A DNA stretch of 64,000 nt, taken from NCBI GenBank assembly GCA_003427395.1, contig BFEA01000013.1, positions 4,869,759 through 4,933,758 of the forward strand. The letters are read 5' to 3'. The notes under the pieces are model-generated. The model saw nothing but the letters and a program-made list of their open reading frames with translations. It had not been told where the DNA came from and did not search any database. This DNA comes from Chara braunii. Lineage: Eukaryota; Plantae; Charophyceae. Position 1 is the first letter of the stretch, and every line of letters starts with the position of its first letter. A program made the position numbers and the translations under genes. Shown in pieces: positions 10,383 through 56,099 of the stretch.

Positions 10383-10394
10383 TGGTATCGGAAC
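10383..10394 (+). promoter_or_regulatory. Primer-binding site (tRNA-iMet-like)
   Basis: TGGTATCGGAAC, 2 nt after the LTR end; 10/12 match to TGGTATCAGAGC. Confidence 0.75.
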
Positions 10395-31755: not shown

Positions 31756-33344
31756 GGTTTGACCCAGTCAAACACAAGCAGAACACCTTCCCCTCGCCTT
31801 CCCCCATTCATTCTGTCCGAATTCACACAAATAATTTGGGTTATTATAAATACTTCTAAATTTTACCTTTCAGATCATGTCCTCAACTCAAAACAAACAA
31901 AAGTAGCTAGCTTTCTCAGTCATACTTGCAGCCTCACAATAACAAAAGGCAGTATAGTTTTAGATGATGGATCACACGTGTAAAACGAATTTATACCTGA
32001 GTGTTCCCTGCCTCCAGAATCCCGCATAAGCTTCAGCAGAGTTCCCACAGTCGTGGGCAAACTCCCCATAGAGTCTTGGTTCAGTCCTACGGGTTGCAAT
32101 CTCATGTGCCGTCTTCCTCTTGTAACCTTAGACTAAACTTAGAGTAAGAATGGCAGAAGGAGAGGTCTCTTAGTCTCTCAAATGCAAGAAGGGTACTCAC
32201 AGACTCACATGAGAGGGCCTTGTAGCCTTCGATCTCCTTAGGGGTCCGCAGTGGTGGCCAATGACACAACGGAGGTTCCCAGATCTTGGTCAAAATGCAG
32301 AATAACAATCTTCCAGACGGTCCTCCAAGTCGCAGTAATAATGCCTCTATGGAGCTTAATCACTCTCTTGAACACAACGTCGTTCCTCGTGGCCGAATCG
32401 CCGCTACGCAACTTAAAAAGGATGCGTTCAAACAACGCACACTTCCCTCCCCAGTGCTCTCTCCAAACTGCAGGCAAATGAGGCAAGCCCGGCAACTGCG
32501 TGCAGGAATAAGCGCAACGGATAAATACAGTTAAAAGCTCACCAGAACAACAATGCACGTCTCTACGTATAGCAATACACAGCGTGTATGGTAGTACTGG
32601 TCCCCAACATCGTAGGTCGAGTAAAGGGTCCACAACCTATTAACCCTGACTGTGTAGTGATGGTGGCAGCTATCTGACGAAACTGTAACTTGATCTAGGA
32701 AAGATGGTCGCACATTGCACAAGATCCACAGTATAGTGAACATAACCCAATAAGTTAATAACCGTCTCAACCGAATATCTGCCCAGTCGTGGTTGTCATA
32801 GCAAGAATCCAGAGTCTATCTATCTTTTTTGGAAACACTAATAACAACTTGCCTCTACAACCACAACAGTTTGGAGTTTATTCAACATTAAAGGCTTGTT
32901 GAAAAGATCAGTACTATGCAGCGGTCCGCCCAAACGCTCGATCAACAATACTTGAACTCACAGTAGTAATGTTGGAGTATACAAAAGCAACATTTAGTCA
33001 TGCGGCACCCGCAAATCGTTAAGGAAACAAAAGTTACATAGAACAACAATAATATATAACTCCTGAAGAAGAACTGTCGCAGTATAATAACGGTGGTAGT
33101 AGGTCTCAAAAGTTGTATGGAATAAAATCACCAAGTTGGAAATATCGCAGCAGTCTAAGTTTCCTGGCAGCATCACAACCTCCAACTCCTCAGCAACAAC
33201 TCTCTGAAAAATAATAGTTTATCGAACTTTATTCAACTAAGGAACAACAACGGTCTTGCCCCAACTCTAAACATGTTATTCGTTAAAATAGGAGATTATA
33301 TTGTGTCATTTTTCTAACGAATTCATTTTTGGCTACAGCCTGAG

Positions 33345-33905
33345 CAACGTAGGCACACCCATCTAGGACTTATCCACATGCGGAAGCTTGCTGAGATCCA
33401 TACTTGTTAAACTTCATAAACGAGATGAGCAAGGTGTCATGATTGAATCCTGGTTGTATAATATAATTATTTAGGTGAGGACTAATTTGTACAAGCATGT
33501 TCATCCTTCGCCTACGACGGTTGTTTGGATGTTCGATGAGATCTGGACGAAGTGTTCTTCAGAAGACCTAGTGTAACGATAGGCACGCCCATCTGGGAAC
33601 CCTGAGCAGAAGTGTGTTGGGATCTATACTTGTTAAAATTAAAGTTTACAAATGTGATGAGCAAGGTGTCATTATTGAATCCTTGTCGGATAATACATTT
33701 GTTTAGGCTAGTCGCTAAGTTGTGCGGGTTTGCCAATCATCTCGCCCGAGATGGTTGTTTGAATGTTGATGAGATCCGGACTTCTTTACAATACTTAGAG
33801 AGATGATGGACCCGCCCATCATCTAGCCCGATGTGTGAAAGTGTGCTAAGATCCATACTTGTTTATAATTGTGATGAGCAAGGTGTCATGATTGTATCCT
33901 TGTTT
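33345..33905 (+). repeat. Left subterminal direct repeats (3 copies, ~225-bp period)
   Basis: GATCCATACTTGTT...GATGAGCAAGGTGTCATGATTG at ~33395, 33620 and 33850. Confidence 0.75.
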
Positions 33906-34669
33906 GACAAATTGACATGTTTGCTTTGAACAATGTGTCATTGTAAACTTCGAGTAATGTAACAGTTAGAGTAGTAGTCGAAGTAAAAGTCAAAGATGTT
34001 CACCGTTCGTTTTGTAACAAACAGTCAGTTTTGACATACAAGCTCGTTTTCTACGACAACACCTATCATATAGCACAAGAACTTCAAATTTTGCACATTT
34101 TTGATTGAATCCACACTTTAATTGGTCATGGACAAAAGGCTTCGGCACGAATGCAAAGTTGTTGGGTACATATAATGTAGGTGGTCACAAGTCATATGAT
34201 TCTATGCAGACGCCAGAGATGTGATGTTAGTGGTTTTTGCATAATAAACCCCACACTCACACACTCACCGAGATTTGTCTTGCATCCACACACCAAATTG
34301 TCATGTCGCACTACAATTACCGATATTATTTGATGTCAATCACATGTAAACACAATTCGAAACGAGGAACACAATGCGCACTTGCTCCGCCGCATGAGAA
34401 ACGGTTTGGACGTGACAAAAATTCCAAAGTCACCACGTGACGCCAGACTGGCAGTGGACATGCCAAAGATAACTCAAACTCACAACCGTAAAAGAAAACA
34501 ATGTCGTTGTGAAAGCGACAGTTGAGTTATATCAGGATTTACAGAATATAATCATTAATGAATGGACTATTTTCGAAAGAAAGTTTATAAATCAATCAAA
34601 TCCATCAAAGACAACGACGTTCTAAAATACACGATGTCAATTGTCGTCTAATAAGTGGAATGTCTTCAC

Positions 34670-35390
34670 AAGAGGACCTAAAAGGTAGTCGATCACCACG
34701 TTGCAATAGTGTCGCAAACATCAACATGAACACCCCACAACTAGCTCCATTCACTTGTCTTGGAACTCCTTTCACCGCAACATTTGTTGCTATCGACTTC
34801 TAACTCCTACCCGACCGCCTATGTAATGTTTGAAGTTTCAAATACTATACAATCAACTTGAAAACACTAAGGTAAAAACTCGAATCAGCTATAACGCGAG
34901 GAAAATAATCAAAATTTTCGAGGACATTATCTCTGAAGTTGATGGAAAGGAAGATCCAGTGATCATTATCTTTGTAGACAGGAACAAACATAATATCATA
35001 TTGAAGCAGATCTACGTTTTTAGCCCACCTTTCCACCCCACCGTATCCTTGAAGTTGCGGTTTACTGAAGAAGAACGAATTAAAGTTCAAGACTTGAAGG
35101 TCTGACGAGATGTCACATGTCGCATATGCGGTCGATCCTAATAGCGCCATGTAAACATTGACCACCTCATCATTCACCCTGTCGTCGATATAGCAAGAGG
35201 GTGAGAAAAGTTTTGCTGCAATTCGCAACTGGCTATCGACGAGGGCAGAGGGAGCAGTGTGAGGTGGCACCAAGCCTCGTTTAATGTCGTATAAAACCCG
35301 CAAGCTTCTAGGCGCAGTCGCCGCAACGAATCTTCCCCCGCGTGTTTCGCGTGTTGTGGTCCGCACTACACAACATCGAACAAAGGACAC
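34670..35390 (-). pseudogene. Ulp1/SENP-type SUMO protease (peptidase C48) carried by the transposon
   Basis: VNDEVVNVYM...FNSFFF...GYGGVERWAKNVDLLQYDIMFVPVY..DHWIFLSINF...NFDY, then GVPRQVNGASCGVFML at ~34720-34770 (His/Asp/Gln/Cys set present). Stop at 34845. Confidence 0.9.
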
Positions 35391-37694
35391 GCGGGGCAGT
35401 GAGAAACGGAGTGTCTAAGCATTGTCCTTCATCACATAACGCGTTACTAAGTATTTTTCAAACATGGCCTGAACCCTACTCACAGATCGTGGATATGTCC
35501 CTTTCTCTCGGGCAGAAGGGAAAAACACTCCTCAATGGCAATGGCATGCTCCTTCTTCCCGATCTCGACATGAATCCCTGATGCTTTTAATATATCCTTA
35601 TGTTTTGTTGTCAACCCGGCTACTTTCTGCAATATGTGTTCCGAAAATTACAAGAACCTCCATGTTCGAGATGACCCTACCCCTGTACAACAGAAGAAAG
35701 AAACGAAAAATGAATACACATTTCCCAACACGAGTCCGACGAAAGTGACAATATAAAAGAACCACATAATCTACAAGACGCAGAACCTCTCCAATTATAA
35801 AACTCCGATTTTGCATGGCCATGAGCACGGAGCTGCGTATGCGCGGCTGGACAACAGAATGACATACGCATTCGAGCTTGACACCCCCGACCTTTTCAAA
35901 GGAAAACAACAACAAACCACAGAAGCGGAAAACCAACATTCCCTGGAGTTCGGATTCCGACGGACTTTTTCCCACAGCAGGCACACATTGACTAACCACA
36001 TTATGCATTGACATAGGAAGTGCGGATTCCGGCGGACTAAAACCACCACTCTCTTCACGAAGAAAAACCGTAATTCGGATTTTTGCGGACTTTTTCCCAC
36101 AACAGGCACACAGAGACTAACCACATTACGTATCAACATGGGAACTGCGGGTCTTAAACCATTACTCTCTCCAAGGAGAAAAAAACTCCATTCCATTGAG
36201 TTGCCCAGGTTCTTAGCTAGGGGGCGAGTACGTCGTGGCGTTCATCACTGCTTACCAGCGGGTTTATCCCTTTGCTCCTTCGTCGGTGACGTTGGTGCTA
36301 GTAACGCCAACACGTCGAGAGCTTGAGTGCCAACCGTAGATTTTTTCGGGGACGTGACATGTTGCCTGCCCCCGACTTCGCCCTCCCAGCTGGCGGCGAA
36401 GGTGGCGCGCAATATCGGAGAGTTGGGTGGTGAGAAAACAGTGGCGGAGGGCACAAAAGGTGTGACATTGCGGGGGTCGTCCATGATAGGTGTTGCAAAC
36501 CGTAGTGCGGACACCTGCTCGTCGCCGAGTATGCCATCGATAACTTCAACGATGCTTATACGTTGACTTTGTTCAGCCAGGCTCACGGCAACGGAAACCT
36601 CTCGCACCGGTGTTGGAGATCGACTGTAGCTGTCAGCGGTTGAACCTCATAATCTTCAGGGTCTGCTGAAAGGTCACTGACCACCTGCATCTCCATCTCC
36701 ATTGTTGTTGCATCGTCGTCGACATCACGCCCGTGATGCTCTGTGTACAACAGCCCGAACGAGTTAGACGACTCTTTGCGGTCGGCATCGTCCTCACTGT
36801 CCACCCGTTCCTCGTCTTCAATATCGAAATCCTCTTGTTCACCCTCTTCTCCTCCACGCAATAGAAACAACTATTTTTCTCTTTCCTCCCCTTCTTCCCC
36901 CTTTTCCCCTTCTTCCCCTTCTTCCCCTTCATCCCTCCGTTCTCCCGAAAGCTTGTCGAATCCCACGGACCACTCTTCCGTCCCCACACAAGTAGCCCCT
37001 CCCGCCGACATGACAACCCGTGTCTATGGACCCCTTTGTGAAGAAGTCCGGACCCCGGCGGAATTTGACGTATCTAGGTGATTCGGCGCTCCACTCGCTC
37101 CTGGTGCCTCGGGCGACGTAGTTCGGATGCCGGCAGACTTCGCCACATGTTCCTTACCGGACCTGGCAGTTGCATGTCCAGCAAGGGTCCCCCCCCGCTC
37201 CCCGCCACTGCGTTCCATTGTCCTGGCCTCCTGGTGAGGTGAAACCTATCCCCTATCAGTGGTCCCCTCTACTGTNNNNNNNNNNNNNNNNNNNNNNNNN
37301 NNNNNNNNNNNNNNNNNNNNNNNNNNNNNNNNNNNNNNNNNNNNNNNNNNNNNNNNNNNNNNNNNNNNNNNNNNNNNNNNNNNNNNNNNNNNNNNNNNNN
37401 NNNNNNNNNNNNNNNNNNNNNNNNNNNNNNNNNNNNNNNNNNNNNNNNNNNNNNNNNNNNNNNNNNNNNNNNNNNNNNNNNNNNNNNNNNNNNNNNNNNN
37501 NNNNNNNNNNNNNNNNNNNNNNNNNNNNNNNNNNNNNNNNNNNNNNNNNNNNNNNNNNNNNNNNNNNNNNNNNNNCCCTGTGGTCCAATCGCGGGGCGCA
37601 CCTTCCAGTCCACCCATCCCTTCGAAGGGCTTGTGTTGAGGTCGTAGAATTCGTCCGAGAGTTCCAACCACTGCTTGTCCTGAAGTTCTTGAAA

Positions 37695-40600
37695 CTAAAG
37701 TTCAGTAGTGGAATCGATGGCCGGGTCGGCGGGTTGAAGGTTGGGATTTGCATACCTCACTCTGTCGATCACCGAACTCCTTGGGAGTTCCAGGTACTCG
37801 GCCTTGGACTGGCATGGGTACGGCTCCCACAACCCTTGGTCGTTGATGAGGGCCATGATCCACTCGCCCTTCTGGATTGCCGGCTGGATAGTTCCCGAGT
37901 GCCAAATCATGTCATGGCCCCAGTCCGCCTCGCTCGATCGAGTGTGGTCGAGCCCTTCGAAGTGAATGGTATCATCCTTGCGAGAAGGATTATCCAGCGG
38001 AACCGAACTCCCGGGACGCAATGGAGGCGGGGCGGCAGGCCGAGGCGTCAGTCTCGCCGCCAGCTTACTCAGGGTCTTACCCAGGGTGAACGTGAGCACA
38101 GGTGATGCCTGGGTGGCCTGGCTTGTTGAGGGACCGACCGACGAGGAGCCTGGGGCATAAAACACCGGAGCATGATGGTAATCGATCTCGATGTCATCGG
38201 TGTTGCTGTCCTCCTCCGACGTAGAGGTGTCGAAAACAACGCCTGTCTCCGCCTCGTCGTCCGTGGAGATCAAGGCACCATAACTCTCGAGCTTAAGCAC
38301 GTGCTCGGACTCGGTGAAGTACAAACACTCCAGCCGGTCGAGGAAGTTCTTTGCGTTCTTGCGCAACGATAACATGTGTTCCTTGCGGCGCGTGTACTCA
38401 GCGTCGTTGTCCCTCCTGGACCGCGTTTCCAAAAAGAGGAAGTCGTAGATCATGTTCCTCTTCCGCTCACTCAACTTGAACCACATGTCCGAAGATGGTT
38501 CCCGAACGCGTGTTGGTTTCACGCTCCTCGAAATGAACTCGCAGCGGTTGGCTCCAGAGTTGACCTCGCTTTTGAGGAACTCCAACGTGTATTGCAACAA
38601 CTCAGAATTCCCTTCCAGCGCGACCACGTGTCGGCCACTCTTCAAAACCCCCCACATGACTCGCTCGTGTAGCTTGCCAAGGAACATGACGCCCTCCCCC
38701 TTTTTGCATACAAATTTCAGCAGATGGGCCAATTCAGTGGGGTTCTGCTCCATCTCCTTGTAGACCTTCCTGTCAACTCCAGGCATGACCGACGCCCACT
38801 CGCAAGGGTCAAAGGGAATCTCCGATATATCTGTCGGGGTCACTTTCTGATGTGCCCCGGCAGCCGTAGTATCACCTGCCGACAACCTAGCATCATAAAC
38901 GACACAAGTATTCTTCCGCAAATCATCACCTTTGAAGAGAACGTAAATGTGTTCGTCAACCGAGTACAAGTTGTTCCCCACTGGAAAACTTTTCTTCTGC
39001 TGCGTCCTCCTAACCCACTTCTCTGCGATTGCCTTGACAATGGGCTAATGGCGCAGGGCCGCAGGCTGGTCATGAAGGAGTAGTCCCAACGCCGAGGGAT
39101 GAAAGCGACGACCGTTCAGTGTGACGGAAACAATTGCTCAAGGGGGGAATTCAAACTCTCGAAAGTTTTTGGTGTCCACTGTTTGAAGTCCAGCGGCTCG
39201 CACAGATCGAGAAAGCATGTGTGACATTTGGCCATCACCAACGAAAAATAAGAACGAAGGGCAGCGTTCTGCTTCTTAATATTGTCCTCGCCCTTCTCAT
39301 CAACTAGAATCCACAAGTGGTTGTAAGGCGTCTTGTGAAGCGTCTGCGCACACTGCCGCACATAACTCACGATATTTCTGCACTTGAGCTTATTTCCCGC
39401 TTGGGTTCCTCGTAACTGTTTTTGGGAAACCCTTTTCCTTCCACAGCCACCGAATGTCCTTCATTGACAGTTTTTAGGTGTCTTGGAGGTGCCTTCAAGT
39501 CCTTCTTGTTGTCCTCCGAGGCGACCAGAAAATACCCCTCGAACTTCTCGTCCGAGAAGTAAACCATACGTGCAGGCCACCTCTCGAAGTTGTACCTCAA
39601 TGCGACGTCGCTGCCGAGATGCGTCCTGGCTGCAGCCGCTTTGTGCTGGCCGGAAACAACGTAATAATAGTATTGGTCTACCAACTCGTCCTTCCTGTCC
39701 TCTGGCTTCAGACGATCCGCTCGTATGCCTGACTTCGGTTTTTCCAGCCCGAGTGGCGCCAGCTTAAGGGTAGGCAACTCGTACGTCTTTTCGGCTTGCG
39801 AGAAGGTCATCCTCATCGCTTCAATGATGAGCTGCGTGTGCACGGGATCCAGCGACCGCTGGTTGTACGAGGCTTCCCACTCACCAATGTCGACGACCCG
39901 CGACGAGTTAATAAAGAACTCCCGCTTTGTCCGCACGCCATCTTTCCATTCCAGGAAGTACGAGGCGTTGATGTTGATGAGGCCCTTCGCCTCGACAGCA
40001 CCCGACTGAGGCTATTTCTGCGCCGACGCCGGGCGCTTCGGACCCGATGTGCCCTCTTGCCCCTCAACTCCCTTCCTTTTTCCCAACATCGTCTGGGGGT
40101 TCCTTGCCTTATGTTTCTTTGCAGAAACCGCAACCTCTTCCTGAGGATCTCCGCTTCTCTTATGCACAGGTTGTTGTACACCCTCTTCGCCCCCCCCGAC
40201 TGACGCCGACGGCCGGTCGTGAACAGGGGTGTGCCCTTCCACCCCAGGAATACTGAGGATAGACTGGTCTCCCCGCCTAAGCGGCGAAGCCCGCGTCTGC
40301 TCTTGTTCTTCATCGAAGCGACTATGGGCCCTGCCCCGGTGGAGTTAGGAAGAAGGACCGAAACCCAAATCTCCCCCTTCCGTGGGAGCACCGCTGGATT
40401 CGAACCCGATGCACATTTGAAGAGGCTGCGACAACTCTTGGTTGAATAGAATGTGGCAGGATCCTCCAGGTTGATGTTCCTCTGCTCCACCAAGTCAAAA
40501 AATTCCCTCGCCGAAACAACACCTTCTACTGTGAGATCTTGGTAGAAAGGGGTCTTCAACAACCCCCGCGCCAGACCTCTGGAACAGGTCGAAAGACAAA

Positions 40601-40904
40601 ACCGCCCCTTTGGAATTGGCAACAACGTCGTTCTTCGAACTGTAAACAGTGTGCAACTTATAATATTGCGTGTTTTCCTTTTTTGCAGGGTGCCATCCGG
40701 CAACCAACCCAAACACTCTTTACGCCTTTTTTTGTCTTCGAGGAATATAAGAGGGTCGCACAGAGGTTTGGTCGGCTCGGACTCATCCCCGCAACACCAA
40801 TCGACGAACCATTTGGTATGCACATGATAGGACCACGATTTGGAGGTTTGTGATTCCCTCACCGATGTTCCGGTCGGCTGCTCCTCGCCCCTTGATGTGG
40901 ACAT
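37695..40904 (-). pseudogene. Large cargo gene: ParB/Srx-like domain (~39500-39930) fused to a degenerate beta-class N4/N6 DNA-methyltransferase-like domain (~38560-39230)
   Basis: ParB-like: YNQRSLDPVHTQLIIEAM...LPTL...YYVVSGQHKAAAAR...WPARMV. MTase-like: CFLDLCEP...VVAFIP...EHIYVLFKG...EQNPTELAHLLKFVCKKGEGVMFLGK...GRHVVALEGN. Frameshifts and stops present; probably continues as low-complexity sequence to ~36245. Confidence 0.55.
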
Positions 40905-41099
40905 CGTGTCTGCACCGGTCCAAGAGACCGAAACGATCCAACACACGGAAGACATACATAACCCACCCCACCAGAGAACTATGGTTTCCAGAGGACCACA
41001 TATTACGCACCACCAAAAGAACATCAAACTCGTCGAATGCACATAGGGTTTCAAGATTGTTCAAGTTCGAATACGCATAGGTATTCACATGCGTTTTCA

Positions 41100-42225
41100 C
41101 GCTCTGTGCGAAGTTCGGATACCGGCGGACTTAATGAATTACTGGCGGACTTGACGAATTCGCTGGACACTCTCGCAGACTGATAACGACGTGCAATGTT
41201 ACGGAGCGTGAGTCGGTTCGCTGACTGCTAGAGTCTGTCGTTCACACGCTCAGACCCAACAAGAAGGCACACCAAACTCGCTTCAGTAACGTTTGAACAT
41301 GACGGTAGACTGCACGAACAGTTGACAAGTTCGTCGGCATCCTCACTTGTTCACATCCTCTTCATGCTTTGTGCGAAGTTCGGATACCGGGGAACTTGAC
41401 GAATTCGTCGGACAATCACGCAGACTGACAACGACGTGCGGTGTAACGGAGTGTAAGCCAGTTTGTCGACTGCTAGATTCTGTCGTTCACACCCCCCATA
41501 CCCAACAAGAAGGCACACCGAAGTTGCCCCAGTAGTGTATAAGCATGATGAAAGACTGCACGAACAGTCAACAAGTTCGTCGATATCTGAACTTCTTCAC
41601 ATCCGTCTTCACGTTTCATGCGAAGTTCGGATACTGGTGAACTTGAGGAATTCGTCGGGCAATCACGCAAACTGATAACGGCGTGCGATGTCACGGAGTA
41701 TGAGCCGGTTTGTCGACTGCTAGACTCTGTCGTTCACACGCCCAGACCCAACAAGAAGGCCCACCAAACTCGCCCCAGTTGTGTTTGAGCATCGCGAACG
41801 ACTGCCCGAACAACTGATAACCTACGGGAACTGGAGGGGAATTTTGTTTGTGGAGTGCGAGACTCGGCTCAAAACAGATCCAGATCCAACAAGAAGGTCC
41901 ACCAAACTCGCCCCAGTTGCGTTTGATCATCACGAAAGACTGCCCGAACAACTGATAACCTGCGGGAACTGGAGGGAAATTATGTTTATGGAATGCGAAA
42001 CTCTGCTCAAAACAGATCCAGATCGAACAAGAAGGCCCACCAAACTCGCCCCAGTTGCGTTTGAGCATCACGAACGACTACCCGAACAACTGATAACGTG
42101 TGGGAACTGGAGGAGAATTCTGTTTATGGAGTGTGAAACTCTGCTCCAGATCAAACAAGAAGGCCCACCAAACTTGCCGCAGTTGCGTTTGAGCATCACG
42201 AAAGACTGCACGAACAACTGATCAC
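41100..42225 (+). repeat. Tandem repeats (~250-bp units, then ~138-bp units) upstream of the cargo gene
   Basis: Recurrent CCAACAAGAAGGCCCACCAAACTCGCCCCAGTTGCGTTTGAGCATCACG at ~41255, 41500, 41747, 41888, 42026 and 42154. Confidence 0.85.
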
Positions 42226-42529
42226 CAAGGTCCCTTAAGAGTGCTTTTGGCAATCCGCAAAGACAACCACCGACTGTCTGGCACTTGTTGTAGGTGGTCG
42301 GGCGACAAACACATCAGGATTGAAGCTATTCGGCACCCCGACGTCTACTCCATTGGTGAGACAAGAATTTGTGAAGTCCGGATTCCGGCGGACTTAGATT
42401 GTGGGCATGTAGAACAGGAATCACAGGGTGGCGCTGTTCGAAGCTGGCACCGCTCCGGCAACGGAACTGAAGTTGAAGTCCGCCGTCGTCAGAGTACACC
42501 GGCCAAGCAGTACACCGCCGTGGCCCGAC

Positions 42530-43870
42530 TTCACATATTCACCAACAGTGGCAACGAAAGAAGTTCGGATGCCGACGGACTTGGCGGTATTCCTGGTAAC
42601 TCGTCAGGAGTTATCCGTTTTCACCAGTACGTGAAGTTCGGATGCCGACGAGCTTCGTGTTTCCACACAACCTCCGCTGCAACTAGGGTCTTCCTGGTCC
42701 AGCATGGGAGCGGGGGACAAAAGAAGCTCGCCGACATCCAAACTTCACGTTTTGTCTGCGGGGGCTGACTGAAGAAGTCCGCCCGCATCCGAGATTCAAT
42801 GCATGGCCTCCTCTGCATTCGAACTTCATGTTCCAGGTGCGAGGGCTGACTGAAGAAGTCCGCCCGCATCTGAAGTTCAATGATTGGGCTACTATGCTGC
42901 TCTACAGTTATCATTCGCCAGTATCCTGACTTGAATCGTTGTCTAAACATTGCAACTGGAGAGGCAAGGGTGAAGGCTAACTCGACGAAGTGGATGGTTG
43001 TGGAACTGATGTTTTTTCGCATTACAGCCTCACGTATTGTTGCTCTGCGGCTATTGTGGAAGTCTGTGGGCATCCAGACTATTAGAATGAACCCTTGCCT
43101 CTCCAGTTGCAATGTTTAAACACGATTCAAGTTCGGATACCGGTGAACTAGAACTGTTTAGCAGCTGAGTACGCCAATCATTGAAGTTTGGATGCGGGCG
43201 GACTTCTTCAGTCAGCCCCCGCAGCCGGAACGCGAAGTTAGGATGCAGAGTAGGCCAAGCATTGAAGTTCGGATGTGGGCGGACTTCTTCAGTCAGCCCC
43301 CGCAGACAAAACGTGAAGTTCCGATGTCGGTGAGCTTCTTTTGTCCTCCGCTCCCATGCTGGACCAGGAAGACCCTAGTTGCAGCGGAGGTTGTGTGGAA
43401 ACACGAAGTTCGCCGACATCCGAACTTTTTCCGTTGCCAATGGTGGTGAATATGACATTGTGAAGTTCGGATGCCAACAATTCAGAACTACAACTTTTTA
43501 GCAGCAGAGTAGGCCAATCCTTGAAGTTCGGATGCGGGCGGACTTCTTCAGTCAGCCTCTGCAGCCGGAACGCGAAGTTTGGATGCAGAGTAGGCTAGTC
43601 ATTGAAGTTCGGATGCGGGCGAACTTCTTCAGTCAGCCCGCACAGATAAAACGTGAAGTTTGGATGCCGACGAACTTCTTTTGTCCTCCCCTTCTGTGCT
43701 GGACCAGGAAGCCCCTAGTTGGTTGTGAGGAAACACGGAGCTCGCTGGCATCCGAATTTCAAATACTGGTGAGCAAGGATAACTGTTGACGAGCTGCCAG
43801 GAATACCGCCAAGTCCGCCGGCATCCGAACTTCTTCCGTCGCCAATGGTGCTGAATATGTGAAGTTCGGA
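42530..43870. repeat. Large inverted repeat with a duplicated right arm
   Basis: 42530-42971 pairs with 43091-43470 and again with ~43480-43870; loop ~120 bp. Confidence 0.85.
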
Positions 43871-44577
43871 TGTTGACGAACTTCGTGCATTCACGCATAG
43901 TCTGCAGTGACTACAGGCTTTTGTGCTTGCGATTGGACCCCGCACGGCTGTTGCGATATTTTAAGTTCGGATCCCGGCGAACTACAACAGCGCTTGGATG
44001 GGGTGTTCAATATGCGTCCTTTCTGAGTCGGCTTAAGCACTCGCTGCACTGCAAAAGCGGCTGGATGGATTCCGATGTGGTTCGATGATGAACAAGGTTC
44101 GATAATGTCCGATGGCCGATGCTGGACAAGATCCGATGGAGTCTGATAGATTTTCGCTTCACATAAGCGCTCGAACAAAAAGCCACACACGATCTCTCAT
44201 TCAGTCAGTCAATGAACACATCGATCACTGACCGACAATCAAACAGTACATCAAGCAAGAGATCGACCACGCTCTGTTGATCAGTGGACTAGTTGATTGG
44301 ACGGACGGTCGTGTTTTGATCGATCACTTGTTTTCGTAGTTGAGGATCGTGGGGTGCGACAATAGCGAGGCGTGTTTATGCACACACACAAAAAGATACA
44401 CGATGGTATGGTCCGCGTTTGATATTGGTTGTTCACTTGTTTGAGCGCCCGGTTCAAGCTATCGATTGGTCGACTAACTTATTGGTTGAACGATCTATTG
44501 ATCAAACCGACTACGGATGATGATGTGTTGATCGAGCGGTTTGTTCTGTCAAACTGGTACGAACACCGGTTGAATAT

Positions 44578-44835
44578 GACAAGCAAGCGATCAAACAAAC
44601 ATCGCACCCTCAGAGTGATCAATCGGTCGATTAACGAACAGATCGTTCCGGATAATTAACTTGCTCGACGAGTTCATGCCCGTTCATTTGCGCATATCAA
44701 ACACGCGCGTGTTTGATCTGCAAAAATGAATGGGCATCAACTCGTGGAGCAAGCTAATTATCATGAACGATTTGTTCGTCAATCAACTGATTGATTACTC
44801 GGAGGGTGCGATGTTTGATCGATCGCTTGCTTGTC
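44578..44835. repeat. Loop-less palindrome with ~129-bp arms, centred on ACACGC|GCGTGT (44706/44707)
   Basis: GACAAGCAAGCGATC...ATCAAACACGCGCGTGTTTGAT...GATCGCTTGCTTGTC. Confidence 0.9.
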
Positions 44836-47800
44836 GTAATCAGTTGTTCATCTTTATGGAGCATATCGACTAATCGGACATTCGCTTACATAATACTCAC
44901 ATGCGCACGCTCACTTTGGCACGCGCGCACAGACCCATATACACACACCCGCACACACTTTTTTTTTTTATCTGAGAGGTTTGTCGACTGTTCGCTTCGT
45001 GGATTCGACGAGCGCTGTTGATCGTACCGACTCCACCACCGCAAACACATGCATGCAACAACGTCGGCGCGATCACATATTGTATCTCAAAACATAAACT
45101 CGCCCAGTCGATCGGCTCTTTCGTTCCTTTAGACCTCCGGATCTTTGTTCTTTTGATGGCAAGGTGGCTCATCCAATCAACCGGCCGACCAATAGACAAA
45201 TAAATAAACGATCTGTTGATTGCTGGAATGGTTGATTGGATCATTCATTCTTTGGTTGGGCGCCAGTAGATACGATGTGTCAATGGGGCCGATTGGAGGA
45301 ACCGCCTTGTTGTGAGCGAGTGAGGTTCAAGAATTTCTCCACACAGTCGCATTGACACATCCACATATGCTCGCACGAGTGCACACGTGAAAGCACACAA
45401 TACAAAAAAAAAAAAAAAAAAACATACCAAAAACGCAAGTCGCCACACACACACACACGTCCGAATGCAGGAAACCACAACAGGCACGGACAAATGCATA
45501 AGGTCACTCGAACGTGCACAATCATACATACAAACACACACGACATCACTCTCACACAACCACGGGTGTTTACACACGTAAACGAAACGCGTTGGGAACA
45601 GGAAGGTCGCGTTCCATGAGTCCCCTTTTCGATCGACACTCACCACGATGAAGGTGTCGTCTAGAGAACGGATTGTGCGCACCTAAAGTAAAGCCGTGGA
45701 AATCACTATGGAAGTGGCGCAACTTGCGTGGTGTGGCGGCAAATGAATTGAGTTGAACGAGCAGCGCGCATGCGAAGCAAGCCCATCAGCAGGTCGCTGC
45801 TTGGCGTGAAAGACGACGCTGAATACCAGAGAACGCGATAAGAAAGGTGTTTTGCGATGCAAGTGCGTGTAGTTTCGCGGTGGTTGGATGACATGGCGCA
45901 GCGCTGAAGATTGTGATGACGTCAATCACCGCGTTTCTCAGAGAGAGAGAGAGTGCAGGTGGTCGGTCCGACAACATCTCCCCACCGAAATGTGATGCTG
46001 CGAAATGAGCATTGGGGGGGCGAGATTTGTTTCATAGACTCGCACGGCTTGGGTACACAAAGGGCTTTCCGCGTGGAAAGGAAGGCCTTTTTCGAAATCG
46101 AAATTGGGGGCCCGGATGGGGGGCGGGAACATGTGACCCATTGGACCCAAACGAAAAAGCGCTGGAGTCCAGGAACCGTTGGATTTGCCCAATCGACGAC
46201 CAGGGTCCTTCTGCGCATAGGGCCTACATACAACACGACGCGTTATGAGGGTCGTTGCTGACAATCGTTGGCGGGCCTTTCCGGGCGCTACCGGCCCTGC
46301 CAAGCGACTGAAAGGTGGGAGGGGGGGCTTTTCGCTGACGGCAGGAGGACCATTGCACTGGACGGCAAACGAAATGGAAGGCCATCCCTGGTCAAGCCGT
46401 CCGATTTGCGTATCGCAAGGTCATTTCTCGCCAGGGCACAGGGCCTGCGGGGTGAACGTCACACTGGATAGCGACCCGGAGGCTACCAGGAGGATGAACG
46501 TCACACAAGGGAGCAACCCGGAGGCTGCAGCAGGAAGTTTTCCACACAACTGCCCCCCCCAGTTCACCCCCCCCTTCCCTGAATTACATCGTGCTCGACG
46601 ATAGCTCCGCTACGCTGCGCCATTGTCGTCGTTCGTCCCAAGCTGCGCCGCGCCGTCGTCGTCCTCGGTGATCGACCTCCTAGGTACGTCAGAGTTGCGC
46701 TCGAAGACACCATGGCGTCCGAAGACCGTCGCGCGTATCACAAATTTTGCGTGAGACTTCTTCCGCGTCATGACAGTCTCGCAATGTTGTGTGTCGTCGC
46801 CAATCTGAATTTCGAGTCTCCCTCTCCATCCTCTCATGTCTCCATTTTCTCACCGCCCCCATGATTTGTTCTTTAGTAATGTCCATTACACGTACTGTTG
46901 CTCCTTGTATGTTCGCTCCTCTACTTATATCTCTTTAGTAATGTCCATTGCACGCACTCTTGCTCCTTGTATGTGGTGAAACCAATCGCGGGTCCCCACG
47001 TGGCGGAAGAAAAAGGCCACGAGTACTGTGTGCCACGAGCGGGCGACCTGAGCCATCGCTACCCACCGTGCACTCTTTTTTAACGAGCAAATCTGCTTGC
47101 AACGGGAGGCTAGGACTACATGCTGATGACCAATCCCATGGCGGCATGATCGCGCGAGCATGAACGTAGAAAAGTCTTTTATGCGTTCGTGCTAGCGCGT
47201 TCATGCCACCATGGAATTGGCCGTCAGCAGGCAATGCTTGCTTATCGTCGTGAGTTGTTTTGTTCGTTAACGAAGAGCGGACGACGGATAGCGATGGTTG
47301 GGGTCGCCTGCTCATTGACAAATTCCTCGGTTCATCTTGACAAAGACTAGTGGTGTGTGTATCACCTGTTGGCGCGCATTTTCGTGATCACGTATCTTCA
47401 TGATCACGTGATCATGACAACACACGGACTATTCGGAAGCAACGATTGTTTGCGAGGAGGGGGCAACTCTGTTCGTTGTCCAGGTGTGACGTCGATGCAA
47501 AACGAGGTTTTCGTCAGCTATAGAAGAGCACGAGGCGGAAAACGATGGCCCAGTTGTATACGCACGCACTCCCGTCGGTGCGAAACGAGGTTTTCGCAGT
47601 GGTCTGCCACGTGGACCGCAGCGCTCTCTTCGTTGTTGGATGAGAACCTCGTTCCTCATCGACGACATTGCTTGATAACGAATACAGCTTCCTCCTTCGC
47701 TCGTCCTCTGCGATCAAGCGTGTGGTCGTGAGTGCGACACGTGTGATTTCTCATGAACAATTGCCCATGAGTGCGACACGTGTGATCAAGAGTGTGACAC

Positions 47801-49699
47801 ATGTGTGATCAAGTGTCCTACAGTCTAGTACAGTGTAGTCGTCATCTCACAATCGCGATAAACGCACAACAGGCACGGTCAAGTGTTTGATCGCGAGTGT
47901 GACACGTGTGCCTTCTCATGAGCAACTGTCCGTGAGGTGATTATCGTGGTCCGTCGGGATCCTATCTTGGACGTGTGCCTTCTCGTGACCACATGAAGTT
48001 TGGATGCCGGCGGACTAGCACGACTGCAAGTCTTTCATGGCTATGGAGTCTTAGGTTGGTGACGCCTTTCTGAGGCGGAGACATCATTGTTGAATTGTGG
48101 TGGTCGAGGTCGTGAACATGAAGTTCGGATCCTGGCGGACTTGTGGTTTGGCAACCGACTAGAAACGAGCGCAGTAGACAAATGGTTCTTAAAGTAGTTG
48201 GGCCGGGATACAGGTTTCCTGCGAGTCCAGTTTCGGACGGTTTGCGGGTTGCAACCTCCCCGCGACACCGCCAACTATGTCATCGTCCTCTGTTCTCTCT
48301 CTACTGTGCGCTGGTGGCACGACTGCTAGCTTTTCGCACAAGCAGTTAGCCTCAATTGCTGAGAACCCTGATTTCATAAAGTTCGAATCAAGGCGGACTT
48401 TAAGTAATTTGTACTGCCAAATCCATCGCCTCAAAAGACCGCAATTCGGCAACATCAAATGTGGTTGTCATTGCCAACAAGGTTTCTGAGGAGCCACAAA
48501 AATTTTCCACTCCGACCCCTATGAGCCTCAGTCACCAACGATTACCCCATGTTTCGCGGAGACGTCGCTTCGCAAAACACCTTCCTGCAACATCAGGGTC
48601 TGACAGTCATTGTTGGTGACTTGCGAAAAATAAGAGAACGGTCGTCCTCGACACCGGTAAAGCCCACCCACCAATCCTGTCCTCCCTCCCGTCTCGACCA
48701 AAGTTCGCAGGAATCCCAACTTCCGCATCCACGGTTGTGGCTTGGCGCCACAGACCCGCTGTTCTCCTAGTCTAGCAGGGGGAGTAGGTGACGAATCTGG
48801 ATCAGGGAGGACCAAAAGCTTGTAGTGGGCGTGCACAATATTTGGACAGACCTGTCCACCATACGTTTCCACCCACTACGGGCCCGCTATGACTCACCAT
48901 GTGTTGGTGAAGGACACATTAAATGGGAACTCCATCCCCTACAAGTTCGGATCCTGGCGAACTTCACGTAAAGACCCCCAGCAAGGGCAGTATCGCGGAC
49001 ATCATTCGACAATGAGCTAGCTCTCCTCGTTAATAACCCTCTCCTCGTTTAAAAACCCCTTCGGGTCCAAGCAAATGTTTTCCTTGCCAACGAACGACAT
49101 CTCCTCATTTGAAAACCCCTCCGGGGTTTTGTGGGGTCTGCTGAGGGCCCCAACAACCATGTTCTTCTTAGTCCCCTGACGTGTGCGCTAGGAGTGGGAA
49201 ACAACGGGAATCCAACTGCCGCCGCGGGGAGAACCGCGGGTTCTTAGGGTTTAGGGGGTGGCTGAATCGGGTTTTGTGGAGGTTGTTGAAGGGGCCTTTA
49301 CCCTTGTTCTTTTCTAATCGTGCACAATTGTTGAATGACCTCCCGACAGTACACTGTTCGGGATCGCGGGACCCCGATCGCTGACAAGTTCGGATCCTGG
49401 CGAACTTCGAGGATCGCGCTTTGTTGTGGCCATTCGCGGAATCCGCCATCGATTTGTCGTGGTTGACGCACGACCGTTGCGAGGACTGCAGAAGTGGGCA
49501 TTGCTAGCACACGTGAGTGCGGGTTTGTGGGGGATGCAAAAGGGTCTTGGAGCTCTGGTCGTTTTTTGTACCGCCGCCTTGTCGCTGGAGTTACAGAATG
49601 GGGGTTTGTGGGGGATGCATAAGGGACATTGCCAGCACACGAGCTCGCCTTGTCGCTAGTGTTCATCAGGGTTTATAGGGGGTCGCTTGAGGGACCTCA

Positions 49700-52600
49700 A
49701 ACCATGATTTTCATTTTTGCAACCAGACATGGACCTGCTGGTGATGGTAAACTTCTCTATGGATGCAATTATTGTCGCCAGAGTCGATGCAAGAAATATT
49801 TAGATGCCCTTCGACATATACAATCAACGCAGTCGACGGATTCCAAACTCTGCCAAGTTCGGACGTCGGCGCACTTCACATGTCGCGATTTGCCAGATCT
49901 TTCGTGTCACCCGACTGCAATTTCGCGCCTTCTTTTTGCGGCATTGGGGATTTGTGTAAGGGGGGGGGGAGGTTGGGGTTAAGGGGGGTGTGGTGACGGG
50001 TGGTGTGGGGTAAAAGACGCATATTCTTGGTATTCATGCTTACAGTTTTCTCGGCTCTTTTGCAGGGTGTGGAGACGAATTCGAATTGCCCGTTCACTCC
50101 GCACCGAACAGTTCGATCGATTTTCCTAACGAGAATCTCGTCCATGACACCGATGGCTACATGACAGCAGAAAGGACGGTTCAACAAACGGCCGCATGAA
50201 CCAGGCTATGGATGCTCAACGGGCCATCGACTTGCATTTTCACCTACAAGAACTGGAGTTGTCCCCAACGAGCTCTTCCGACAGTTCGCCGTTCCAACAA
50301 TCCAATGCCAGGTTTACCAGAAAACGAAGTCTCCCTTTTCGTGAAAGCTTTGGGGATTGCATCCATTTGCTTAGGGGTTTTGCGACACCTTCTGCAAGCG
50401 AAGAGTCGTTTGCCTCCCAAAACGAGTTCCACGTTCCTGGCGAGGTGCACCCCCAACTTCGGCGGACAAATGTTGCGTGTCGATGACTGTTTCTTTCACA
50501 ATCTCTGATGCCGAGAGTGAGAAGTTGGTGGTCACTGGTTACTCGTCTAGACAACAATCCTCTTCCAGTGTGTCGTTACAGCAAGCTAGCTACAGTGGTA
50601 CGAAGTTCGTTGCCACCGACTGTTCTTTGGAGGAACCGTCCACAGCGCGAGCGAGTCCAATGCAAGTGCGATCTCATAATGTGATTCCTGTTGAGAGTCG
50701 GTCTGGGTCGGAAGTGTCTGGCAGGAGCGATAAAGAAAAAATGACAATACTACAATTTTTGCTTGCACCTCTGTCACGGGAGAGAAGACCTTATAGCATG
50801 GCTAATAGGAATGCTAGGAAGGTAGAGAAGTACAAAAGAGCAAAAGACATGCTGTCCGAAAAGAAACTACTTATAGTACGTGGCATGGCATGTTGCAAAG
50901 CTCGTTGTTGTTACAACGTGTCGCCGGAGGAAATCCGAAAGGTTAGACAAGGATTGTACATTAAGAGTCTTGAAGAGCAAGCGGAGTGGTGCATGAGACG
51001 CCTTAAAAAATTCATGTTGAATAAAGGTGGATCGAAACATGTCCGTCCCGTAGAGTTAGAAGTTAGGACGTTAAATGTGCATCAAGACCTACTGCAATGT
51101 TCTCGGTGTCTCTCGTAATACGTTTTATAGCTATAAAAAATGATTGGACAATGGCTTTGTGCGTTGCGAGCATGGGCTAACGGGTAGATAACAACCAAAA
51201 GACAAGACAGTCACCATGCTTGCCCGCATGAAAACATTCATAGACTGTCATGCGGATAGCATGCTGAATGAGGTTGCTCATCAACATAGGGTTTAGAAAC
51301 CGAAACTTCGACTGCCAGCTACTTTTACGAAGCGTTCAATTTATGAGTCCATCAAATCAGGCTTTGTTGCTATCGACCTCGAAGTCGTGTCTGGATCAAA
51401 CTTTTATAAATTGTGGCAGAAACACTTTTATCACGTTTCACTCGCACACTCGGACACATTCACAAAATGTGTCGTCTGTCATGAACTAAACGAACGTATA
51501 CAATACAGTGTTCTTTCTCGAGATTGAGAACGAGCTTAAGAGGAGATGAAAGCTCTCCAAAGACGGCAAGTTGAACACAGACTGGACTATAGTCGAGCGA
51601 AGACTGATTTGATGGTTTGTCCAAACGAGCGTTTGTGTCTCATCATTGATGGCATGGATTAGAAGAAGACGACTATCCCGCATGTTGGTCATACGAACTA
51701 CTCGAAAGCACTTAGGCACGAGATGATGATGAAGACGAATCTGACAGGTGTCATTGCACATGGTACAGACCTTAGTATTGATGTCTACACGTTGTTTCTG
51801 TATTTCTAAACATGATTCGAACACAGTCGCTTCTTGTCTTATGAGAACCCTCATCGAAATTCAAGCGAGGGGGACGCCACTGCTATCGTTTTTGCGCATT
51901 CAAGCAAATAATTGTTAGCGGGAAAACAAGAACAAGTACATATGTGCGCTACCTGCACTCTTGGTTAAGTTCAAAGTTTTCAAAGAGGTAGAAATAGGTT
52001 TCATGATGGTGGGACATACACATATACAGACGTTGACGCTACTTTTAGCGTTTTCTCGAATAAATTAAAAGACGTAGACGTTTATACTATGGATAAGTTC
52101 TAGGAGCTCATAGAGCAATCCTACAAAAAGTCTCTCAAATGTATTTTCCTCGATAGACTAGCGGATTGGATAAGTATAGTAGACTCATGTGTTGCGTCAG
52201 ATATTACTGGTATCTCGAAACCGCATTTGCTTAAATTTTATATGGTTGGAGATAATCTGGACATGCTATAAAAGGAGTTTTGCGATGACCACAACTGGTT
52301 TAGTCTAGTTGTCCGAGGAAGGTCTATCAAAACCCCGATGAAAGCTACGCAGATACTTCCCGACCATTTGACCCGCCTCCTGTGCAACCCCTTCCTCGAA
52401 ATGACTATTATAATGGCAAAAATGGTGTTATTCGATTCCGCAAGTTGTTGGAGAGCAGGCGGTTAACGTGGTGCACTTACAACGACCATGAGGTGAGTAG
52501 GAGATAAAAAACTTTGTGTTATTCGGAGGAGGTTATCAAACATGGCGACAAGATCATCACCAACAGGTTGTCCTGACAACCTTTGGAAAGTTTTTGACCA

Positions 52601-53120
52601 AGACCACGACTGCTCGAAAACGATCGACAACCTTCTTCTGACAGTGCCAACATCGATGACAGGGAACCCCTGTTTATTTGACGAAGAAAAGATCGCTCGA
52701 AGACCAGTTTCGACCCCCTCGTGCATGTTGACATGGACACTTTTCTTATCCTTCGCCCCGCCGATGATGATCTGTCCAGCAACGTGCCTATTTGGGTGGG
52801 CAAAGCTCTCTCTCGTGGTTGAAAAAAATTCACAAAATTAGAATCAAGTGCTAGTGGAATATTGGGTGTCGATTGGGAGAGCAAAGATGCTTCAAGAACA
52901 GTATGATAATGTGTGAGAGAAAAGATGGAAAATAACTGACTAGACACAATGGAAGCATGCTGACTCGATCACTTTTGGCTGTGAGAGACCGGCCAGAGGT
53001 ACAAAACCGTTCACGACTGAACTTCCCATTCCTTCCAATGTTCGACTGAATGCTCAAGCTGCACTTCGAGATCTGAGTCCATCTACTGAAGGGAGTGTCG
53101 ATGCACGGGACAAAAGCGAC
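49700..53120 (+). pseudogene. Sola/DUF7869-like DDE transposase, decayed; probable N-terminal Zn-finger exon
   Basis: GCNYC...ALRH exon and TTTGCAG acceptor at ~50067. CCKARCC; FTKCVVC; LIIDGMD (~51650); LTGVIAHG; DSNTVASCL; IQANNC*RENKNKY (~51900); GFMMVGHT...DVDATFS (~52000). Confidence 0.8.
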
Positions 53121-53622
53121 GAGTGCACATCATATGTCTTGTCCGTCCGCCCAATAGGCGAGGGAGTAGGATTTTTGAAAATGACTATTCGGACGGAAAT
53201 TTTGAAGGGAGCATATTCTCTTTTAACTTAGTGAATTGCGATGATTCTGTGGTACGACAAGGTGACGGATTTTGTTCACGGTCTAGGGTTGATTTTTGTA
53301 TTAACTTAGTGAATTGTGATGATTCTGTGATACCACAAGGTGGCAGATTTTGTCCACGGCTTAGGGTTGATTTTTATAAGATGGTTGGTTAAGCAATTTA
53401 TGAAGTTAAGTTAATCGTGAAGGCGATTTTTTTACTTTTTCAACATTTTATTTTCGTTTGCGTTTGCATGTCACGTCTTGTGTAGGGAGTGCGACCGAAG
53501 TCATGGCCGATTGGCATGATTATTCGTATCCCATTCGCCCTTGCGCATGTGGATTGCGTGGTGCAGGCGACGATATAAAAATTATCGGGCCAATGACAAC
53601 AAAATTCGAAAACGACCCATGA

Positions 53623-54108
53623 ATGAGTGTTGTCCCCTTTTTGGACAAACCTCTTGATGCCTGGTCCAGGGCAGAATGGGATAGAGCGATCTTGGCAAGG
53701 AAATGTCCATGGCATAAGGAGTATAAGTTTGCTTCCGCGTCGGAGTGGGGGAGTCTAATCAAAGTACCTCATTATGTCAATGGTGTCAGACAACTTCCGT
53801 CTCTGCGCGCCGCACTCGGACATGAAGAGAATAAGCGGTTTTACCTTCTCATGAAAAACGTCACAAGGTCACCTCGAGTGTGGTCTGCGGACTTGAAACA
53901 AGAGTTGTTGGACTGTGCATCGTACAATCCATTTTTGGAACTATATCTGCTGCGTGGTGCTGGAATGGAGCGACAGGGTGTGTCGTACTGTTGCATACGG
54001 GTTGTCTTTGGTCGGTTCCGACTTCTACAGAGTGTTGTGTGTGGCATGTTCGAACCTAAAGCGGACTTTGGTAAATGCTGTAGTGCTAATTTCTTCCAAC
54101 AAGCTTAG
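53623..54108 (+). CDS. Unknown ORF (161 aa) downstream of the transposase, inside the element
   Basis: ATG-initiated ORF with protein-like composition; no recognisable motif. Confidence 0.35.
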   Translation: MSVVPFLDKPLDAWSRAEWDRAILARKCPWHKEYKFASASEWGSLIKVPHYVNGVRQLPSLRAALGHEENKRFYLLMKNVTRSPRVWSADLKQELLDCASYNPFLELYLLRGAGMERQGVSYCCIRVVFGRFRLLQSVVCGMFEPKADFGKCCSANFFQQA

Positions 54109-54594
54109 AATCTATGGTCGCAATATGGGGAATCTGCGCCTTCTCGACGAGAACGGCACTCCGATTTGGTGATTGTCGGTCAAATTGATGAGGTTGACAA
54201 GTGGCATGAGGTAGAGCAAGTGGCATGTTGTGTGCGTGACGCCATCGGTAAGTCCTTGGCAGGTTTGGTAGGTTCGTAAGGATGAAATACATTTCAGTGT
54301 TCTCGGATGTGACGACGAAGGGACAACCACAAACCCTTGCTTTCGGGTTGTCAATGAATGTCTTATACGGGTTTGGTTCTCATAGGACGCGGGGACACTT
54401 GTAAATGCTTTAAATTTGTAAATAATAGCGTTTTAGAAGATTTAGATTACGGCGACTTGTAACATTTTATTTAGATGTAATTCAATTTAGAGTTGACTCG
54501 TAGCATTTAATTTAGACGTAGTTCGATCATGCATTTACGATTTCTCACACGTGTGCATACGATTTTTAATTTTTAATTTTTTATGAATATTTCT

Positions 54595-55385
54595 TGAAGT
54601 GCGACCGAATCCATGGTACTCACTTGACTTCAAGTTTATGACAATGTCATGTAAGTTTATGATAATTTGTCGAAGTGCAACAAAATTCATACTTAAACCA
54701 ACTCGTTTACCGTGTGATTGCATAAACTCTTCAATTGACTTCCAGTTTAGGTCATTTAAAATACGTCTGACTCAATGCTCAGTGATATACAAAATTAATC
54801 GAAGTGTGATGCAGACTTTGAGGTCATTCACAACCTTCTCGTTCAGTGTCTCATGACATTTATCGTTCGAGTGAATCTCACTGTATAACAATGGCATGCC
54901 AATTACGTATTTTAAGTAACATAAATTATCGAAGTTCGATGAAATCCATACTTAAACCACCTCGTTTACAGTGTGATTGCTTTGAATTTTACTCTTCGAT
55001 TGAGTTTCAATTATGCAAGTGACACCAGTTACGTCTTTTATGTTACATAAATTATTGAAGTGCGATGAAATTCATACTTAAATCATATCGTTTACCGTGT
55101 GATTCTCTTAAAGTTACTCTTCGATTGAGTTCAAATTTATGCAAGTCACAATGTCATATAAAATAGTTTTGACTCAATGTTCACACAAAATTTTGAAGAC
55201 CCGCGAAATAGTTGTTCAATGTCTCATTGCAGTGAGTGTTGAATTCTCTTGAGTTTCAATTTCTGACAACTCCATGTCAATTACCGTAACGACTTTTAAG
55301 TTACAAGATTTATGGAAGTGCAATGGAATCCACACTTAAACCATCATGTTCAGTACGTGATTGCCTCAAATCTTTAGTTCAATTC
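54595..55385 (+). repeat. Right subterminal direct repeats (4-5 copies)
   Basis: GAAGTGCGATGAAATTCATACTTAAACCA..TCGTTTACCGTGTGATTG at ~54672, 54931, 55057 and 55316. Confidence 0.75.
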
Positions 55386-56099
55386 CAATTTATGGCTTGT
55401 CAATTGCATTTTTCGAGTTTACTACTTATATCCTAGGTTCCATTTAAGTCCAAAATATGGTGATTTTAACATGAAATTAATAGCTTGCAAATACCGATTT
55501 AAAATATAATGTCTTATTTTAACGAATAATATGTTTCTAATCTATTACAACAAATCACTACCTCTCAACACCTCAAAGGGTCAACAACGGCCACACACGC
55601 AACAACTGCACCAAAAACGTAACGATTTTGTTATTGAGAAGTAACACTACCGCTGCCAAGGATATGGCAGCCTATCCGCTGGGTGAACCACAAGTCCTAA
55701 TACTGAGGGGCAACCAACCAGTTTGCCAGTCAGTGGTGGTGGCAAAAAACCACTGTCATCGATGTTCTAAAGCTTGAAACAACGGCTTGTTCTTCCTTGT
55801 CAGTGGCAGAATCACAACTACTAGGCTCACGACAAGTAGGGGTCGCAATAACGGATGACACGATGTACATAGGCATTGTTCGTCGTCATAGTGGTCAAGC
55901 TCTATCAGGATCACGAAAAAGGATGTGTAGTTGCATCTAGGATCATGGCGGTAACCATTAGTAATAACCTTAGGCTCTACTTCTGCTTTTACCAAATGCT
56001 CAAAAAGGAGAAAGAACCTTACGCTAAAATATGGAAAAATACATCGTCGTTCGTCTCTTACTCTCGCTTTGCCTCTTTGATGAATAGTCAGCGCCTACG

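Follow-up and report, generated by a model that had tools for sequence, protein, structure and literature searches.

A giant Sola1 transposon in Chara braunii

We analyzed 64,000 nucleotides of the Chara braunii genome (contig BFEA01000013.1, positions 4,869,759 to 4,933,758 of the forward strand; hereafter, the window). Positions 33270–55535 (~22 kb) are occupied by a dead, decayed member of a family of giant, multi-gene Sola1 cut-and-paste transposons. An original prediction, made without database searches, had proposed a Sola-like element with 33-bp terminal inverted repeats (TIRs) and a TCTA target site duplication (TSD), carrying a SUMO protease, a fusion of ParB-like and methyltransferase-like parts, and a palindromic motif of its own. 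The TIRs and the TSD were seen at both ends, and the main features are as follows.

33266–33269: left TSD, TCTA, read from the sequence
33270–33302, plus strand: left TIR, starting AACAT
34608–35686, minus strand: Ulp1/C48 protease gene, decayed by stops and frameshifts; catalytic domain at 34608–35354
35946–49876: internal 22-bp palindrome, 32 dispersed copies, consensus AAGTTCGGATNCCGGCGRACTT; two lie inside the coding tail
36245–40904, minus strand: cargo gene with ParB-like, helical and beta-class methyltransferase-fold parts and a low-complexity tail, decayed
37276–37575: assembly gap in a Gly-rich coding linker
38560–39230 (approximate), minus strand: predicted beta-class amino-methyltransferase fold; motif IV reads LDLCEP and motif I FLGKxH
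39500–39980 (approximate), minus strand: predicted ParB/sulfiredoxin-fold domain with motifs YNQR and GQH[N/T]
40905–50300: non-coding spacer separating the cargo from the divergently oriented transposase gene; most palindromes lie here
50310–53120, plus strand: Sola1-type DDD transposase (DUF7869), pseudogene
53464–54398, plus strand: orphan gene with an orthologue in locus L009
55503–55535, minus strand: right TIR
55536–55539: right TSD, TCTA

Related loci, numbered from L001 onward, were collected via the cargo gene, a route by which cargo-free copies would have escaped. The TIRs span 33 bp (arms scored at 34 nt are 91% complementary). Five other loci (L002, L004, L005, L007 and L009) have their left end at the identical base, and four other left flanks read AGGT, ACAA, GTAC and GACT. 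L009 is a second complete copy, with both TIRs, an ACGT TSD on each side and the identical gene order. Together, the shared start base, the differing flanks and the L009 TSD show the boundaries of the element and a 4-bp TSD of no fixed sequence. Because the gene order of L009 matches that of the window copy, the cargo is integral to the element, and we consider it close to certain that this is a Sola1 transposon with integral cargo. The left TIR, Ulp1 and the cargo gene are linked in one order in the same five loci, and the cargo is linked to the transposase in L002, L006, L009 and L011. Independent, nested insertion of the cargo was rejected, since it has no TIR or TSD of its own and its order is constant across the five loci. 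The original prediction had named three outcomes that would speak against it, namely copies with the same TIRs lacking the cargo, a TIR and TSD bounding the cargo itself, and neutral cargo evolution; none of these was observed among the loci collected via the cargo gene.

The plus-strand transposase matches DUF7869 and, together with the 4-bp TSD and motifs of the Sola1 type, bears out the DDE transposase that had been anticipated. In the window it carries several frameshifts and at least 15 stops, and its second catalytic Asp reads Asn. Locus L006 keeps all three catalytic Asp residues, with the DGMD, DNCWRENKNK and GHTHxDxD motifs intact; compared by eye, these catalytic motifs fit the Sola1 transposase of Ectocarpus and not its Sola2. 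The ratio of nonsynonymous to synonymous substitution rates (dN/dS) for the transposase was 0.19–0.33 in three long comparisons. That the window copy is decayed, as first described, is evident from the transposase, the ParB–methyltransferase-fold gene and Ulp1, all of which are broken. Broken genes were searched piece by piece, and joined protein pieces served solely to set coordinates for tblastn and codon counting. A protein search with the N-terminal piece of the transposase gave no match within the limits on query length.

The layout of divergent transposase, long spacer, cargo and Ulp1 is kept in a distant locus, L012 (39% protein identity), where a TIR pair was sought and none was found. 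Scans of metagenome and viral contigs gave no further loci, no tRNA or Rfam RNA was found, and we found no paper on this Chara transposon family in the literature.

A sister Sola1 transposase, encoded by a 617-amino-acid open reading frame (ORF) with its three Asp residues intact, lies directly beside the complete copy in L009 (48152–50005). The end of another cargo–Ulp1 gene model (P0142) follows at 55665–55807 of that locus, on the same strand as the neighboring sister transposase; no 22-bp motif of the window type occurs with either of them. A weak (29%) Sola1-like transposase match from a prokaryote scan occupies positions 1423–3300 of L013, a 4.6-kb contig from a Sedimenticola metagenome-assembled genome, and may be contamination.

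A predicted ParB–methyltransferase-fold protein without methyl-transfer motifs

Searches of Pfam, NCBIfam and PDB sequences with the cargo protein returned no match, and its named homologues are all C. braunii gene models. Profile searching against 1.84 billion representatives produced 196 matches, of which the 30 looked up comprised 27 from C. braunii and three Joint Genome Institute (JGI) metagenome proteins. One metagenome contig (L008 1–6445; JGI 3300064063) bears an intact 1419-amino-acid cargo ORF and, after it, a Ulp1 ORF that is likewise intact; the JGI metagenome proteins P0164 and P0159 also belong to the cargo family.

We modeled the structure of an intact homologue, P0101 (23–37% identical to the window pieces), from 141 aligned pieces; the model reached a predicted local distance difference test score (pLDDT) of 84, where an earlier model from a shallow alignment had reached only 42. 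Residues 489–775 are predicted to adopt the permuted Rossmann fold of beta-class amino-methyltransferases (Z 16.5, root-mean-square deviation 3.7, 219 residues aligned to CcrM). Residues 1–164, modeled within the whole protein, match PadC, KorB, SerK, Pnob8 ParB, SbnI, Atu1540 and sulfiredoxin at Z values of 5.4–6.8, which are singly modest; the assignment relies on the agreement of seven structures. On this model the cargo protein combines a ParB/sulfiredoxin fold with a beta-class amino-methyltransferase fold, in agreement with the fusion originally proposed. The nearest Atlas shapes are phage methylases, several of them with the ParB_N plus N6_N4_Mtase architecture. By features, the nearest Atlas clusters to P0101 residues 85–270, in the ParB-like part, are fungal DUF3723 (PF12520; score 0.95), a lead without an alignment. 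In Starships, DUF3723 serves as an accessory gene.

Across at least eight clades, the catalytic motif IV [DNS]PP[YFW] occurs in none of 58 family rows and the S-adenosylmethionine (SAM)-binding motif I FxGxG in none of 55. Absence on this scale places the loss of the methyl-transfer motifs in an ancestor of the Chara radiation; copy-specific decay was rejected as the source, given that the motifs are missing family-wide. The cargo gene of the window copy also bears an internal deletion of ~870–885 bp at 39231 relative to six others, a junction confirmed by single contigs.

No contig bridges the assembly gap at 37276–37575 in the window copy, leaving frame and continuity there unproven. In five homologues the sequences to the left and right of the gap are collinear. 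The interval is read through as one Gly-rich frame, between the same flanking peptides, in L003 (283 bp, no N) and L010 (133 bp, one N). Given these read-throughs, a chimera across the gap is unlikely, though not directly disproved. Three further loci (L001, L002 and L005) have gaps of their own at the equivalent spot, in keeping with a G-rich stretch that is difficult to read. Our conclusions are independent of this gap.

The predicted SUMO protease was confirmed by a PF02902 match of 35.4 bits against a cut-off of 20.7 (E 1e-8) and by a complete His-Asp-Cys triad. Ulp1 follows the cargo gene in distant subfamilies and in the intact metagenome contig. Nine database gene models hold both cargo and Ulp1 sequence, and a spliced fusion is possible; the metagenome contig has two separate ORFs. 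The two cargo genes had been described as divergently oriented. There are indeed two, arranged in tandem on the minus strand and divergent only from the transposase. The orphan gene at 53464–54398, a fourth gene, had been overlooked. At least 12 other copies carry a paralogue of it (35–43%) in their spacer, upstream of the cargo at L002 10127–10777, L006 10157–10807 and L007 5289–5923; the spacer of the window copy has no such paralogue. Family and fold searches gave no assignment for the orphan gene.

Median dN/dS between subfamilies was 0.17 for the ParB part of the cargo, 0.15 for the helical part, 0.21 for the methyltransferase fold and 0.19 for the C-terminal helices, and ~0.3 for both Ulp1 and the orphan gene. 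These values come from simple counting after trimming of poorly aligned columns, between pairs that are not independent. The cargo has evolved under purifying selection, and neutral evolution was rejected by its dN/dS of ~0.2.

Dispersed palindromes that differ between two subfamilies

At no more than three mismatches, the 22-bp palindrome gave 30 matches where 0 were expected. We counted its core, AAGT-NN-GGAT-N8-ACTT, 37 times within the element and not once in the remaining 42 kb of the window (0.39 expected), so that the palindromic motif of the original prediction is both dispersed within the element and confined to it. Seven of the 37 core matches belong to a variant that sits in the subterminal repeats at the two ends and is conserved from copy to copy. 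The roughly 9 kb of highly structured non-coding DNA that had also been described is the spacer at 40905–50300, with tandem arrays and inverted repeats. The repeats of spacer and ends are listed here.

33344–33925: left subterminal repeats spaced ~230 bp apart, with a 22-bp motif variant in each (33384, 33610, 33839)
41140–42226: tandem arrays of 246-bp and 138-bp units
42528–43865: nested long inverted repeats with 306-nt arms (89%), composed of motif-bearing 81-bp units; also in L001, L004 and L010
44571–44842: hairpin with 136-nt arms and no loop; also in L001, L004 and L010
54640–55373: right subterminal repeats with motif variants (54673, 54932, 55058, 55316)

Each of the ten close loci has the palindrome, and those of their flanks that were checked lack it. 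Among other copies, motif divergence was 17% against 29% in adjacent DNA (19 of 25 sites, p = 0.023), with sharp edges. The distant locus L012 contains no copy of the window palindrome and 81 copies of a different 22-bp palindrome, the pattern for which was derived from L012 itself. These counts support a switch of palindrome type between subfamilies, as occurs for the motifs of the Arabidopsis VANDAL transposons. A tandem array of 28-bp units occupies positions 10200–11250 in the spacer of L012.

Palindromes at 35946–35967, 36018–36039, 37044–37065 and 37119–37140, in or just after the low-complexity tail of the cargo gene, translate as a repeated KSAGIRT-like peptide. With the palindrome lying in the coding tail, the family's KSAGIRT-like repeat reflects the DNA motif.

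Comparison with known systems

The uniqueness of the arrangement, as first supposed, did not hold, because ParB-like cargo has been published for giant transposons of two other algae. Sola1-1_Ec32 of Ectocarpus (Dinatale et al. 2025; PMC12477816) is a 21.5-kb Sola1 element with a gene for a ParB-like and N4/N6-methyltransferase protein, for which self-modification was proposed. It shares with the Chara element AAC...GTT termini, a 4-bp TSD and a ParB–methyltransferase gene on the strand opposite the transposase. The Chara TIRs measure 33 bp whereas those of Ectocarpus measure 282 bp, and Chara adds the Ulp1 and orphan genes. Chara also differs in its family-wide loss of methyl-transfer motifs, subfamily palindromes and at least eight clades, the Ectocarpus cargo being known by its published description. 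The Bostrychia Plavaka (EnSpm) elements with PAG2/PAG3 have ParB cargo next to inverted-repeat arrays, and an analogy to VANDAL has been drawn for them (bioRxiv 10.1101/2025.02.11.637652). Like the Chara family, they are giant DNA transposons with ParB-domain and amino-methylase accessories and inverted-repeat arrays. Their transposase belongs to a different superfamily, their ParB is fused to a 2-oxoglutarate-dependent oxygenase and their methylase to SET, and no Ulp1 is reported.

In KIU-type VANDALs of Arabidopsis, VANC is joined to a Ulp1 domain (reviewed in PMC13317346). Transposase, accessory and Ulp1 are thus common to both families, as are family-specific motifs in non-coding DNA; the VANDAL accessory is sequence-specific, and the Chara accessory is predicted to be. 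VANDALs are Mutator-like elements without TIRs, whereas the Chara element has a Sola transposase and TIRs. VANC has neither a ParB nor a methyltransferase fold, and the Chara cargo gave no Pfam family match. No transposon other than VANDAL has been shown to bind copies of itself and release them from silencing (bioRxiv 10.1101/2025.02.11.637652); hypomethylation in VANDAL is demonstrated, whereas anti-silencing in Chara is our proposal. The cargo protein shares domain order and fold with phage ParB_N plus N6_N4_Mtase proteins and with CcrM, PvuII and BceJIV. It differs from phage and beta-class methyltransferases in its low identity to them (6–11%), its altered catalytic and SAM-binding motifs, a helical insert of ~320 residues and its eukaryotic transposon context. 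Given the Ectocarpus, Bostrychia and VANDAL/KIU precedents, the Chara family is not a new class.

Candidate functions of the cargo and its palindromes

We regard it as evenly poised whether the cargo protein, acting non-catalytically, binds the palindromes of its own element with an anti-silencing outcome. While the family was active, the ParB-pseudomethylase would have bound, in dimeric form and without methylation, the 22-bp palindromes of its element and coated the spacer, promoters and ends. Ulp1 would have stripped SUMO from silencing proteins, such that copies of the same subfamily stayed transcribable and mobile, in a mode likened to that of VANC/KIU of VANDAL and TnpA of En/Spm. Several observations weigh against this proposal. 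The transposase of L012 is 55% identical to that of the window and has thus diverged along with the cargo, so it could itself be the binder. The motif swap is known from a single distant locus (two motif types), and kin share traits, so co-evolution is not proven. Although nearly all rows carry the ParB box GQH[N/T], the second Arg of the GxxR of ParB-type cytidine triphosphatases (CTPases) is missing, and the helical region matched no known DNA-binding helix-turn-helix. No transcripts were found in two poly-A RNA runs, of which 6–12% each was read (0 reads in the first; 19 mostly partial reads in the second, none at 99% identity). CpG decay was 0.12–0.20 throughout the element, not lower near motifs, and close to GpC and other transitions, with little excess over them, a pattern that speaks neither for nor against protection of the motifs.

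More tentatively, a phage-derived ParB-methylase may have become a non-catalytic, sequence-programmable reader that co-diversifies with its palindrome in each subfamily and recruits a SUMO protease as protection of the transposon against silencing. This would be a second, independent VANDAL-like arms race among streptophytes, possibly combined with end pairing; we think this broader scenario has somewhat less than an even chance of being right.

Because motif variants occur at both ends, a role in transposition itself is also a live reading. Here the cargo protein would bind the palindromes in the manner of ParB on parS, loading, spreading and compacting 20–40 kb of DNA to unite the ends for the transposase. 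We consider this unlikely; it is compatible with anti-silencing binding. In all copies with retrieved ends, variants with the AAGT..GGAT..ACTT core lie 100–900 bp inward of both TIRs, and the great length of the elements (22 kb here) and the ParB/sulfiredoxin fold of the cargo are in keeping with end pairing. So is the precedent of En/Spm TnpA, which binds subterminal repeats and aids excision. Most motifs, however, are found around the promoters in the central spacer and not at the ends, the Arg customary in the CTP-binding box is missing from GQH[N/T], and Ulp1 would be left unexplained.

Less probable again is that the palindromes are sites for the Sola transposase or the orphan protein, with the ParB-pseudomethylase directed at other targets, for example RNA or chromatin proteins of the host. 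DNA transposons commonly have subterminal repeats to which the transposase binds, and the divergence of the L012 transposase means that a motif swap fits this explanation equally. Thirty internal copies far from the ends would nonetheless be unusual for transposase sites, and the inverted-repeat arrays of Bostrychia adjoin the ParB gene rather than the transposase.

We view as improbable a methyltransferase fold that is active through atypical chemistry, depositing N4-methylcytosine (4mC), N6-methyladenine (6mA) or some other mark on or close to the palindromes. By sequence position, the first Asp of motif IV, a motif I Gly and the acidic motif II residue are largely conserved; the fold is under purifying selection (dN/dS 0.21), and the Ectocarpus protein is predicted to be a 4mC/6mA enzyme. 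Against this, no row carries [DNS]PP[YFW] or FxGxG, distant clades differ freely in the motif IV region, and a rotifer enzyme loses activity when the catalytic Ser and Tyr of its SPPY motif are replaced (PMC8885841). That the palindromes are by-products of local tandem or inverted duplication, with no binding partner and unrelated to the cargo, is very improbable: many copies do lie within tandem arrays and long inverted repeats, and alignment seeds can inflate motif conservation, but solitary copies are also found in unrelated settings, coding DNA and both ends among them, the conservation is sharply bounded, and the distant subfamily has its own palindrome of equal length.

Returning to non-catalytic binding of the palindromes by the cargo protein, the roles of ParB cargo in brown and red algae are proposals so far. 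The Chara family makes self-recognition testable, in that it offers several subfamilies, of which at least two have palindromes that match in length and exclude each other, together with an intact P0101 beside an intact Ulp1. At stake is whether giant transposons of algae bear programmable self-recognition modules and whether the methylase fold has been turned into a reader. Many of the ~200 related database proteins, mostly "hypothetical" gene models of Chara, are transposon cargo and not host genes.

Sequences flanking the element

Outside the element, at window positions 30460–31755, lie ~18 short repeats spaced ~60 bp apart, which share a conserved core flanked by partly self-complementary sequence. 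Farther to the left, positions 25482–25898 give a weak match to Ty3/gypsy gag.

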